Below are positions 41,377 through 50,653 of a DNA stretch of 64,000 bases, in pieces. A program made the position numbers and the translations under genes. This stretch comes from Macrostomum lignano (Eukaryota): assembly GCA_002269645.1 (NCBI GenBank), contig NIVC01004023.1, positions 52 through 64,051 of the forward strand. The letters are read 5' to 3'. The notes beneath the pieces are model-generated. The model was not told the DNA's origin. It made no database searches and was given only the letters and a program-made list of their open reading frames with translations. Each line of letters begins with the position of its first letter. The first letter of the stretch is position 1.

Positions 41377-44300
41377 TCAGGGAAAATCAGCCCTAATGAT
41401 GTCGATGATGCGGTTCATCAGATCGTCGAGCATGTCGCTGAGCAGCTGCTTGTTGGCCTCCGCGATGCCCGTCAGGTTGTTGGCGATGAGCTGCATGATG
41501 GTGCGCACGTTCTCAACCAGATCGCGGCTGCCGATGCCAATCTGGATGAAGATCTCCACGATCTTGGCGATGGGTGCCGCCAGAACGTTGGCCAAAGTGT
41601 CAACAGCGCGACGGATCAGGTCGGCGGCCTCGCCAACCTTGTTCTCGATGTCGGCGCGGAGCTTATCCAGCACCTGGGCAGTGGCAGTGGTTGCAGGGAA
41701 ATTTTCACCATTCGATAGAAATTTTATTCCTAAATGAACATTTTATCAGGTTTGAAAAGACCTGGTGCGCGAAGGCTGACAGTAGGCTCTTAGGAATAAA
41801 CTAGTTAGAGCTCCCCGTTGTGGCGCCAGCAAAGAATGGAATAATTTTTTTTTGAATAAACTGCATGTAGCTTCTGACCTTATCCTTGGCATTTCAGCAA
41901 TTCCCCTCGTAAGCCTTGACATCTCAGCAATTCCCCTCGTAAGCCTTGGCATCTCAGCAATTCCCCTCGTAAGCCTTGAAATTTCAGCAATCCCAACCCC
42001 CAGTGAGCCTTGACGTCTTAGCTTATACAATAATAACTAAAAAAAAATACATTACGGAGATAGGAGGTGTTCATTTTTTCATAACAAATAGTGTATTCTT
42101 CTTTTGATACGTCTTGCCCTTCTTATAGCTCTATTGATATTGACAAAGGTTTTCGTTTAAAAAATAGGATTTTATGTTAATTTTATATCCTACGTATATT
42201 TCCTATGCCCAAAATCGATTTGTTTTATGAATCTATTTTTTATCATTCTGTCACACAGTCATGAAGCTTTAAGAATGATAAAATAGATAGCTCAGGGGTC
42301 GGCAGCTCTTTTTTACTGGCCAATGATGGCCAATCTAGCGCATAACTGCGGACCAGGTGAAGGGAGAAGAGAGGGAAAGAGGAGGAGAGAGAGAGGAGAA
42401 TAGAGGAGAGAAAAGAGAACAGGAGAGATGAGATATTGAGGTAAGAGAAAAGACACAAACATTGTGCTTTGGATTGCTGTTGTGAAGTTTCAAAGGACCA
42501 GAGGGCCGGATAGAGAGGCTTCGCGGGCCGTATAGTTTGCCGACTCCTGCTCTAGCTGGTCAACCTTGCCTCTTATGCAGCAATGTACACTGTAATGTAC
42601 AGTGAAATTCGTACAGACAAAAGGCTCCCTACGCGGCTGGAAAAGCTTTTCATAGTCTATGGCCAGCTACACTGTCAACCACGCGGACAATGAATGGATT
42701 CGTATTTTCAGGCTTCGGAGTGACTAGTGATAATACTAATCATAGTAATCACCTCATTAATGAAGGAAATGATGGGGCCGAGAATGCGGTTGATAATCTC
42801 CAGGAGGATGGAGAAATCCATAGCCTGACGGGCCGCGACCGCGTCGCCGTCGATGATGTCGAGTAGGCCAGAGATCACCAGGCTAAGAATGCTCTTAAAG
42901 ATGGCTTTGTTGGCCTCGTGGATTCCGGAGACGCTGTCTGTAAATTAATTGACGTTTTACATGTACTTAAAATTTTTTCAATGACCAGAGTTAATAATTG
43001 AGTTTTGAGACTCCTACCGATCAGGGTCTCAAGCGCCCTCTTGATAGCCTTGGCGAGGTCGCCAATCTCGATGCCGATGTCGTGAAGAACGCCGATAATC
43101 TTGACGACCGGATCGCGGAGCAGCAGCGTCAGCTCGTCGATGAGGCGCTGCAATTTGGCCTTGGCTTCGTCGGTTTTGTCCTCGATCAGCATGCGGATCT
43201 GGTCCAAGATCTGGATGGGGTAATCGAAAGCTTTTGAAATAGATTTGATGCTGGACAATGTGTGTCTCTTCTGTGTGTGAGGATTTCTCCCTCAGGTTGT
43301 GTCACAGTTAATTAATGGTAGCTTGTGTCACAGGCTGTCTCCCTCAGGTTGTGTCAGTTAATTGAGTGGTAGCTTGTGTCACAGGTTGTCTCCCTCAGGT
43401 TGTGTCTCAGTCAATGAATGGTAGCTTGTGTCACAGGCTGTCTCCCTCAGGTTGTGTCACAGGCTGTCTCCCTCAGGTTGTGTCACAAGCTGTCTCCCTC
43501 AGGTTGTGTCACAGGCTGTCTCCCTCAGGTTGTGTCAGTTAATTGAGTGGTTGCTTGTGTCACAGGCTGTCTCCCTCAGGTTGTGTCACAGGCTGTCTCC
43601 CTCAGGTTGTGTCACAGGCTGTCTCCCTCAGGTTGTGTCAGTTAATTGAGTGGTTGCTTGTGTCACAGGCTGTCTCCCTCAGGTTGTGTCACAGGCTGTC
43701 TCCCTCAGGTTGTGTCACAGGCTGTCTCCCTCAGGTTGTGTCACAGGCTATCTCCCTCAGCTTGTGTCACAGGCTGTCTCCCTCAGGTTGTGTCACAGTC
43801 AATGAATGGTAGCTTGTGTCACAGGCTGTCTCCCTCAGGTTGTGTCACAGTTAGTTAATGGTAGTTTGTGTCACAGGCTGTCTCCCTCAGGTTGTGTCAC
43901 AGTTAGTTAATGGTAGCTTGTGTCACAGGCTGTCTCCCTCAGGTTGTGTCACAGTTTTCTGTGCCAGCTGATTTGTCAGGCTGGGTCACCGCCCCCTCCC
44001 TCAGTGCCAAGCACTCACCCCGTTGATCTTGCCCAGAATCGGCTGCACAATCCAGCCAATGATGCGGTCAATGATGAGGAAGGCCTCGTCGCGCTTGGGT
44101 GCCAGAAGGAAGCCTTTGCCAACGATGCCCGACACCAGGATGTCCGTCACCTTTTCGATGAGGAGGGCCACAGTCTCCGCACTGATGGAGGCAATTGAGC
44201 CGATACCGCCTGAAATAATAAAGTACATGGTGTCATTGAATCGGAAACTGTTACCAACTACAGTGCACCCCTCAGTCTGATAAATGATCTTACCAAGAAC

Positions 44301-50300: not shown

Positions 50301-50653
50301 GGGCGCCCATCAAGAGACAGGGCTAAGGGGCGCCCGTCAAGAGACAGGGCTAAGGGGCGCCCATCAAGAGAGAGGGCTAAGGGGCGCCCATCAAGAGACA
50401 GGGCTAAGGGGCGTATATTGACGCCCCTTAGGGTTGCGGCCCCTTTAAATTAATTTCCTGAGCGTGCCACTAAGAGTGCAACTTGCTATGACATAAGGAC
50501 AAACTACCAGTGTCCAGCGCACAGATGAAGCAGCTACTCACTTCCAGCTTCCTCAACCTGCGACTTCCGTCGGATTTCGGCGGCTGACGCAGTCAGGGCG
50601 GCCAGCCCGACGACTCCAAGCAGCAGCACTACCAGCCAGGACGACAATCTCAT
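41377..50653 (-). CDS. Uncharacterised secreted four-repeat amphipathic alpha-helical protein, 8 exons, 543 aa
   Basis: Exons 50653-50542, 45971-45889, 45772-45580, 44671-44294, 44209-44019, 43210-43018, 42937-42753 and 41673-41377. All junctions are GT-AG with matching phases; total 1632 nt, no stops or frameshifts. Signal peptide [24 protein letters not shown]. Confidence 0.85.
41880..41990. repeat. 30-bp tandem repeat, ~3.5 copies (CCTTGGCATCTCAGCAATTCCCCTCGTAAG)
   Basis: Direct reading; intronic. Confidence 0.85.
42293..42549. mobile_element. hAT (Charlie-like) MITE in intron 7 of the secreted-protein gene
   Basis: Termini CAGGGGTCGGCA / TGCCGACTCCTG; flanks AGATAGCT and CTCTAGCT (imperfect TSD). 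A related partial copy lies at about 54170-54308 (shared GATTGCT.TTGTGAAG.TTCAAAGGACC.GAG.GCCGGAT). Confidence 0.7.
43275..43955. repeat. 26-bp minisatellite (TGTGTCACAGGCTGTCTCCCTCAGGT)n with longer variant units
   Basis: Direct reading; fills intron 5. Confidence 0.93.
45262..45605. repeat. Six-copy 55-58-bp tandem repeat whose unit spans an exon-intron boundary
   Basis: Minus-strand unit CCGCATGGCCGTTGAGGCTCTGTTCG|GTGAGGAGCCGTTTGCTG(n). Confidence 0.95.
46022..50415. repeat. 27-bp minisatellite (GGGGTAAGGGGCAATTATCAAGAGACA)n split by a LINE insertion
   Basis: The same unit occurs at 46022-46479 and 49649-50415. Confidence 0.95.
46480..49648 (+). mobile_element. 5'-truncated non-LTR retrotransposon, RT + RNase H + CCHC (LOA/R1/I-group-like), nearly intact ORF2
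   Basis: Begins at the SDH motif at the end of the AP endonuclease. RT motifs [35 protein letters not shown]. RNase H motifs FTDGS, AE..AI, TDSQ, W.PGH..I.GNE.AD. C-terminal CPFC...ETAEH...C. One frameshift in the C-run at 47128-47132. (AGTA)-type tail; duplicated target GTAAGGGGCAATT at 46467-46479 and 49649-49661. Confidence 0.96.

Follow-up and report, generated by a model that had tools for sequence, protein, structure and literature searches.

What kind of protein is encoded by eight exons strewn over more than 9 kb of flatworm DNA, and what might such a protein do? The question is raised by positions 41377 to 50653 of a 64,000-nucleotide stretch from Macrostomum lignano (assembly GCA_002269645.1, contig NIVC01004023.1, positions 52 to 64,051 of the forward strand), referred to here as the window, where a first-pass annotation made from the letters alone had proposed a hidden gene for a secreted, cysteine-free, helical repeat protein. 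The gene is Mlig018020. Almost certainly it is a transcribed gene of the free-living flatworm M. lignano, one of three near-identical copies; spliced from eight exons and held under purifying selection, it encodes a 543-residue precursor with a signal peptide, followed by a Cys-free, all-alpha, tandemly duplicated chain of a family detectable in Macrostomum alone. The protein represents a sequence-orphan family of a familiar structural class, and since it is already catalogued, though uncharacterised, its immediate importance is modest. As to its role, the features of the chain lead us to prefer, tentatively, a carrier that binds lipids or other hydrophobic ligands outside the cell, a reading that is weighed below against its rivals.

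Gene structure and public annotation

The open reading frame (ORF) of Mlig018020 runs on the minus strand from 50653 to 41377; its eight exons join into 1,632 nt, corresponding to 543 codons plus the stop, and all seven introns are of the GT-AG type. Exon 1 (50542..50653, minus strand like all the others, 112 nt) carries the start codon and the signal peptide, continues with EI... and ends in a phase-1 donor (gtgagt). Exon 2 (45889..45971, 83 nt), bounded by the acceptor tgctacag and the donor gtgaga, encodes a linker and the shortened first half of repeat unit 1, the second half of which, ending in AVEALF, is supplied by exon 3 (45580..45772, 193 nt). Unit 2 is complete within exon 4 (44294..44671, 378 nt = 185+193), without an intra-unit intron. 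Unit 3 is divided between exon 5 (44019..44209, 191 nt; first half, GGIGSIAS…KING) and exon 6 (43018..43210, 193 nt; second half, acceptor ccatccag/ATCTTG at 43210). The first half of unit 4 lies in exon 7 (42753..42937, 185 nt), and exon 8 (41377..41673, 297 nt = 193+101+stop) adds its second half and a 34-residue partial fifth unit (…RADFP) before the TGA. A candidate poly(A) signal, ATTAAA, proposed from the motif match alone, is located at 41303..41308 on the minus strand, about 70 nt past the stop codon. An alternative exon 6 acceptor at 43270, yielding a 563-residue product, was ruled out by the orthologous complementary DNAs (cDNAs) and the 543-residue GenBank protein, which use 43210; the resulting exon 5/6 junction, KING/ILDQ, is present in the orthologous cDNA contigs L001-L003.

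The product of the window is identical to the GenBank proteins PAA48904.1 and PAA54394.1 (BOX15_Mlig018020g1 and g2, hypothetical protein, Macrostomum lignano; UniProt A0A1I8HRI9), which share one 543-residue sequence, and one of the two is the gene on NIVC01004023.1. The encoding stretch of this contig matches part of the window's reverse complement letter for letter, and the GenBank gene on it spans the same 9,277 bp as the eight-exon model. Accordingly, the spliced 543-residue frame put forward in the first-pass annotation is borne out by GT-AG sites, by the cDNAs of orthologues and by identity to the GenBank entry; the adjectives "hidden" and undescribed have to be withdrawn, since the same model already stands in GenBank and UniProt as a hypothetical protein. 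The GenBank annotation of the assembly was derived solely from genome-guided RNA sequencing (RNA-seq) and de novo transcript assemblies, with novel transcripts of low expression dropped (PMC5730564), and the seven junctions are therefore already backed by M. lignano RNA evidence.

The M. lignano assembly is redundant owing to a partly duplicated karyotype (PMC5730564). It holds the locus in triplicate, with about 98% identity between the copies, and tblastn found no paralogue elsewhere within the window. Only the window copy carries a long interspersed nuclear element (LINE) in intron 1; the LINE is missing from the copy on NIVC01002917.1, where the gene spans 6,069 bp, and from the g3 copy on NIVC01000087.1, where it spans 4,978 bp. 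The g3 copy has a 1-bp deletion in the TTT run of exon 8 (14854-14855 of its contig stretch, equivalent to about 41595-41597 of the window), which accounts for its frameshifted 511-residue GenBank protein, PAA91444.1. This copy may be a genuine duplicate in decay, or the deletion may be an error that the long-read assembly introduced at a homopolymer.

Orthologues and selective constraint

A protein search returned three clusters only, the best being the M. lignano hypothetical protein. Two orthologues, P0002 (547 residues, 78% identical) and P0003 (546 residues, 61% identical), are encoded by 1.7-1.8-kb contigs from runs SRR28338164/5 and SRR30276804, which we assume to originate from other Macrostomum species. 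These RNA-seq contigs contain a complete ORF without introns, flanked by short untranslated regions, and both proteins are collinear with the 543-residue model over every exon junction. The ratio of nonsynonymous to synonymous substitution (dN/dS) is 0.17, 0.32 and 0.27 for the three ortholog pairs, at a dS of about 0.9-1.1 (Nei-Gojobori), and therefore points to purifying selection on the protein. In an exhaustive HMMER scan of 1.84 billion representative proteins with a profile of the two orthologues, the family's own cluster alone matched, and at E <= 0.001 that library held no detectable relative from planarians, neodermatans, other animals, bacteria or phages. On these sequence comparisons, the family appears to be detectable only in Macrostomum.

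Repeat architecture

The first-pass annotation had described four repeats of about 125 residues, and alignment together with hhalign resolves the mature chain into four in-register units of 126±2 residues; the peptides that it quoted as examples were all found (residues 92-112, 218-238, 133-147, 388-401 and 514-527). Unit 1 is truncated at its start by ~36 residues, and the chain closes with a fifth fragment of 34 residues that corresponds to helix 1 of a unit. Between units 1 and 2 the identity is 46% (E 8e-21), between the second halves of units 3 and 4 it is 33% (E 1e-9), and the profile of units 1/2 aligns in register with that of units 3/4 over 122/126 columns (hhalign probability 97%, E 8e-11). 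A 13-sequence alignment of repeat units is nearly gapless. Prolines in helices 3 and 4 are kept across units, as in the LIRPF.IRI.D motif of units 1 and 2, and the motifs G-x-I-x-x-ANK and DQ.G recur in some of them.

The exon structure follows the repeats closely. Unit borders, which read ...EALF/EYVG, ...AVLG/GIGS and ...ETLI/DSVS, are marked by phase-1 introns, the intron inside a unit is of phase 0, and the exon lengths fall by module into 83+193, 378 (185+193, intron lost), 191+193 and 185+[193+101+stop]. The four-unit chain arose via tandem duplication of a two-exon, 126-residue module of five helices. With its two-exon modules and its three copies differing by a LINE and a frameshift, the locus offers an example of a lineage-restricted repeat protein that was built and then began to decay.

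Signal peptide and secretion

The precursor begins with a 25-residue, cleavable-looking signal peptide in the classical n-h-c layout, with the peak 19-residue Kyte-Doolittle window (2.44) at residues 7-25 and small residues at -3/-1 (ASA/SAA; A-x-A) preceding an AEIE that is conserved in orthologues. This hydrophobic core is the sole membrane-like segment of the protein. The sequence, as read, contains no KDEL or other retention motif, no hydrophobic C-terminus and no anchor, and secretion of the product is what the predicted signal peptide suggests. It is very unlikely that the protein is instead held back by an uncleaved signal anchor, or retained in the endoplasmic reticulum or in secretory granules, for instance to handle lipids or assist packaging in the lumen: the uncharged N-terminal stretch, rather long at 23 residues, speaks for it, but the n-h-c layout, the ASA/SAA beside the conserved AEIE and the C-terminus free of a retention motif all argue for cleavage and export.

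Physical character of the mature chain

The mature chain (56.9 kDa, pI 5.0, net charge about -13, 25% charged residues) consists of 17.6% Ile, 13.1% Leu and 7.1% Val, with a grand average of hydropathy (GRAVY) of +0.48 and an aliphatic index of 149.5. Cysteine is absent from the whole M. lignano protein and is confined to the signal peptide in P0003; the Cys-free, Ile/Leu/Val-rich character (38% for the three residues) claimed by the first-pass annotation is confirmed. There is no conserved N-glycosylation sequon and no multibasic site at the unit borders, and the few dibasic pairs lie away from these borders and are mostly unconserved among orthologues.

Hydrophobic periodicity peaks at 98-99 degrees, that is, 3.64-3.67 residues per turn (z about 16-17 against shuffles), and the autocorrelation has peaks at lags 4, 7/8, 11, 15, 18, 22 and 29; lag 7 is modestly positive, lags 11, 18 and 29 are strong, and lags 14 and 21 are near zero. 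A canonical left-handed coiled coil, with its 3.5-residue heptad, would show lags 7, 14 and 21. The "heptad-like polar alternation" noted in the first-pass annotation is thus right about an amphipathic periodicity and wrong about the heptad, the period being about 3.65, and the predicted helices are straight amphipathic ones, not those of a heptad coiled coil. Large aliphatic or aromatic residues account for 42% of the residues and, in the 17 predicted helices, cover an arc of about 180-200 degrees of each helix. Relative to the hydrophobic moment, Lys/Arg lie at a mean angle of 111 degrees and Asp/Glu at 136 degrees (Mann-Whitney p = 3e-4), placing the basic residues nearer the polar-nonpolar boundary and the acidic ones nearer the centre of the polar face.

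Such a chain could also act directly on membranes, its bundles opening on a bilayer so that the helices insert or carpet it and cause lysis or permeabilisation in the manner of alpha-helical pore-forming toxins, with prey, microbes or a partner's cells as targets. We consider both this activity and these targets unlikely. The signal peptide, the very hydrophobic Cys-free amphipathic helices, the several 19-residue windows above Kyte-Doolittle 1.6 and the small-residue motif GGIGSI(A/G), conserved in orthologues at one unit border, are in keeping with it. However, every high-hydropathy window contains Lys, Glu or Asp, and the uncharged hairpin or tongue of about 20-40 residues that characterises ClyA/Hbl and colicin/Bcl-2 proteins has no counterpart: the mature chain nowhere runs for more than 18 residues without a charge, and that stretch (249-266) is mostly Gly/Ser/Ala. 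Because no uncharged stretch exceeds this length, the product is not an integral membrane protein either. Moreover, the protein is acidic rather than cationic, no toxin or pore-former family is matched in Pfam, and Foldseek against PDB gave no structural match.

Family and structure searches

No family is recognised at the sequence level, as the first-pass annotation had stated. In Pfam, neither the protein nor its orthologues nor single units reached the gathering score of any family, the sub-threshold matches being helical-bundle noise (Baculo_PEP_C, TetR_C_5, Focal_AT, ApoLp-III); NCBIfam and the PDB sequence search were likewise negative, in line with the exhaustive HMMER scan and with Foldseek. 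A confident full-length match to a characterised family, the outcome that the first-pass annotation named as contradicting its claim, did not appear in any of the family and structure searches. Within the Pfam reporting limit of E <= 10, where HMMER filters discard most matches above ~0.1 and so hide very weak ones, neither the Bla g 1/insect-allergen-repeat family nor any nematode FAR or polyprotein family was listed for the protein, the orthologues or the units, and the cestode hydrophobic-ligand-binding (antigen B) family was likewise unlisted.

AlphaFold2 predicts helices only, 12-45 residues long and about five per unit, separated by short Gly/Pro turns. Confidence was low both for the full-length orthologue P0002 modelled from 11 rows (predicted local distance difference test, pLDDT, 48; predicted template modelling score, pTM, 0.28) and for unit 2 modelled with the 13-row repeat alignment (pLDDT 57, pTM 0.41). 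The nearest Foldseek neighbours, none of them significant, are de novo designed helical proteins, with template modelling (TM) scores <= 0.35 for the unit and <= 0.16 for the full length. At best, these models suggest a fold of tandem helical bundles. Designed helical repeats and bundles resemble the protein in their Ile/Leu-rich amphipathic helices and short Gly loops, yet have no evolutionary relation to it.

Several natural systems invite comparison. Exchangeable apolipoproteins (ApoA-I/A-IV/E, apolipophorin-III) are similarly secreted, Cys-poor and built of amphipathic helices with an 11-residue-type periodicity, and their class A charge geometry is present in the Mlig018020 protein, although this trait is not exclusive to them. 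Their 11/22-residue proline-punctuated repeats are not found here, where the repeat measures 126 residues and the prolines fall within helices 3/4, and apolipoproteins are hydrophilic overall, in contrast to a GRAVY of +0.48. The corresponding Pfam families score far below their cut-offs, PF01442 reaching at best 16.1 vs 90 bits and PF07464 15.8 vs 36.3 bits (both in P0002), and neither is listed for the M. lignano protein itself in the Pfam search. Likewise comparable are Bla g 1, nematode FAR/ABA-1 and cestode antigen B, which are invertebrate, lineage-restricted, secreted all-alpha proteins, often made of 100-130-residue tandem units. Nematode polyprotein allergens, however, have multibasic (furin-type) sites between their units; the Mlig018020 unit borders are without them, so the chain is no polyprotein.

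Resemblance to phage tape-measure proteins

The UniProt entry A0A1I8HRI9 bears the automatic name "Phage-related protein", and matches to tail tape-measure families may explain it. The best of these, phrog_1272, is matched by the M. lignano protein, P0002 and P0003 with E 2e-15, 9e-14 and 6e-8, respectively, and phrog_4200 by the first two with about 2e-12; the tape-measure PHROGs matched include 1272, 4200, 305 and 5493. Tape_meas_lam_C (13-15 bits against a cut-off of 23) and TIGR01760 (13-16 against 28.8) remain sub-threshold. Taken at face value, tape-measure matches in all three orthologues, with these two weak hits beside them, would make Mlig018020 a horizontally acquired relative of tail tape-measure proteins. 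Nevertheless, the reversed sequences match the same PHROGs equally well (E 1e-12, 2e-13 and 3e-8), and shuffles preserving the residue-class pattern still reach E 1e-8 to 1e-11; complete shuffles match no tape-measure family. Because the reversed and class-shuffled controls match too, the likeness is one of composition and helical periodicity, not of homology: tape-measure proteins share residue composition and helical hydrophobic periodicity with the flatworm chain, but the match is non-directional.

Phage descent is further opposed by the lack of any bacterial or phage protein at E <= 0.001 in the exhaustive HMMER scan, and by seven spliceosomal introns and a eukaryotic signal peptide. A phage origin is effectively refuted by the reversed and shuffled controls, and we regard it as scarcely credible; no homology stands behind the UniProt name. 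More generally, a reversed-sequence control can unmask as a periodicity artefact the tape-measure "homology" behind names of this kind.

Possible function

An aliphatic index of ~150, a GRAVY of +0.48, 18% Ile and no Cys are extreme for a protein with a secretory signal. Yet the protein is kept under purifying selection, and this implies a specific physical job, such as the handling of hydrophobic cargo, self-assembly or an action on membranes. Under the carrier reading that we prefer, the amphipathic helices would, once secreted, pack as tandem bundles with Ile, Leu and Val lining the interior, perhaps around a groove or cavity. The bundles could then bind lipids or other hydrophobic ligands and carry them outside the cell, a function analogous, not homologous, to that of Bla g 1, nematode FAR/NPA and cestode hydrophobic-ligand-binding proteins. 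We infer this architecture and the ligand binding from features that favour a carrier: the hydrophobic arc exceeds what packing between helices would normally require by itself, the charges are arranged as in lipid-associating helices, which are marked by the Segrest class A pattern (Lys/Arg at the boundary, Asp/Glu at the polar-face centre), and the chain is highly charged without a membrane-spanning hairpin.

A number of observations weigh against a carrier. Class A-like charge geometry occurs in ordinary soluble helical bundles too, all the named lipid-carrier families fail the sequence tests, and exchangeable apolipoproteins are much less hydrophobic than this chain. Both AlphaFold2 models, with pLDDT 48 and 57, are too poor to judge packing or a cavity, and Foldseek against PDB gave no match at E <= 0.001. 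Neither the full text that could be searched nor the supplements of five M. lignano papers mention the gene ID Mlig018020, and literature searches on gland, secretome and atlas data found no link to it. Since M. lignano is amenable to RNA interference, in situ hybridisation and transgenesis, the function of Mlig018020 is directly testable.

A structural or self-assembling secretory product, in which wide aliphatic faces hold the units together as oligomers, fibres or the matrix of a granule and no ligand is carried, is a possibility that we hold as doubtful, with rhabdites, mucus, cement or shell glands and a seminal-fluid plug as equally doubtful examples of where it might be used. The extreme aliphatic content and the regular tandem units are consistent with it, and the 11/18-residue hydrophobic periodicity is that of straight or right-handed helical assemblies; designed helical-repeat proteins that self-assemble come nearest in Foldseek, though without significance, and the literature attributes many lineage-restricted secreted M. 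lignano proteins to adhesive, prostate and other gland cells. Conversely, the predicted helices are short (12-45 residues) and broken by conserved Gly/Pro turns, which favours compact bundles over long coiled coils, and the chain is without the Cys, Tyr/DOPA (3,4-dihydroxyphenylalanine), Gly or Lys bias usual in flatworm adhesive and eggshell proteins. Reproduction-related genes of Macrostomum are reported as rapidly evolving (PMC7336406); the dN/dS of 0.17-0.32, between orthologues that can still be aligned, points to a calmer pace, a comparison that is only suggestive. Beyond the carrier reading itself, a broader proposal would make Mlig018020 the founder of a Macrostomum-restricted family, without ancestors in other genera, in which module duplication produced an "idealised" helical repeat, serving as a new extracellular shuttle for lipids or hydrophobic ligands, or as a membrane-active effector, independently of known carriers; taken together, this is rather improbable.

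Repetitive DNA within the gene

Intron 1, 4,570 bp long, separates the signal-peptide exon from exon 2, which agrees with the first-pass annotation, where that exon had been placed 4.6 kb away beyond a LINE. The element is a LINE (non-LTR, that is, non-long-terminal-repeat, retrotransposon) fragment of about 3.2 kb at 46480..49648 on the plus strand, antisense to Mlig018020, with an 813-codon ORF at 47120-49561 (RVT_1 E 2e-30, RNase_H E 7e-13). It splits a 27-bp minisatellite of the same intron into a proximal part (46050..46479) and a distal part (49649..50412). The minisatellite is unbroken in the two other copies (NIVC01000087.1 and NIVC01002917.1), and the LINE therefore appears to have inserted after the locus was duplicated.

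A 57-bp tandem array of ~6 copies (45270..45605) begins within exon 3. Each of its units contains the final 26 nt of the exon and the GT donor, so that six potential donors stand in series; six units are present in each of the three genomic copies, and the first donor is the one used by the annotation and by the orthologous cDNAs. Use of a later donor would add ~19 codons or shift the frame. Most of intron 5 is occupied by a 26-bp minisatellite of ~24 copies (43323..43954), which yields repetitive pseudo-ORFs on the plus strand.

Flanking DNA

A 20-bp minisatellite (unit ACACACTGGAGATACACCAG) of ~100 copies extends over 51209-53188, 0.6 kb upstream of the Mlig018020 start codon; it produces long spurious ORFs in several frames, and its length varies between the three genomic copies. 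The stretch at ~40926-41063, about 300 bp past the stop codon, resembles the 3' half of a tRNA (…GGGAATCGAACCCCCGACC…) and is possibly a tRNA-derived short interspersed nuclear element; ARAGORN called no tRNA in it. Further upstream, DNA on the minus strand at ~54184-61590 is homologous to a 1,769-residue gene annotated directly upstream of Mlig018020 in the paralogous locus (NIVC01002917.1 stretch 1-7066), for which no Pfam hit is on record. The 10-16 kb region of the window combines a strong GC skew (+0.4) with overlapping ORFs of up to 973 codons without a Pfam match, and is probably repetitive DNA. A second reverse-transcriptase fragment is located at 29398-29967 (RVT_1 E 4e-10).

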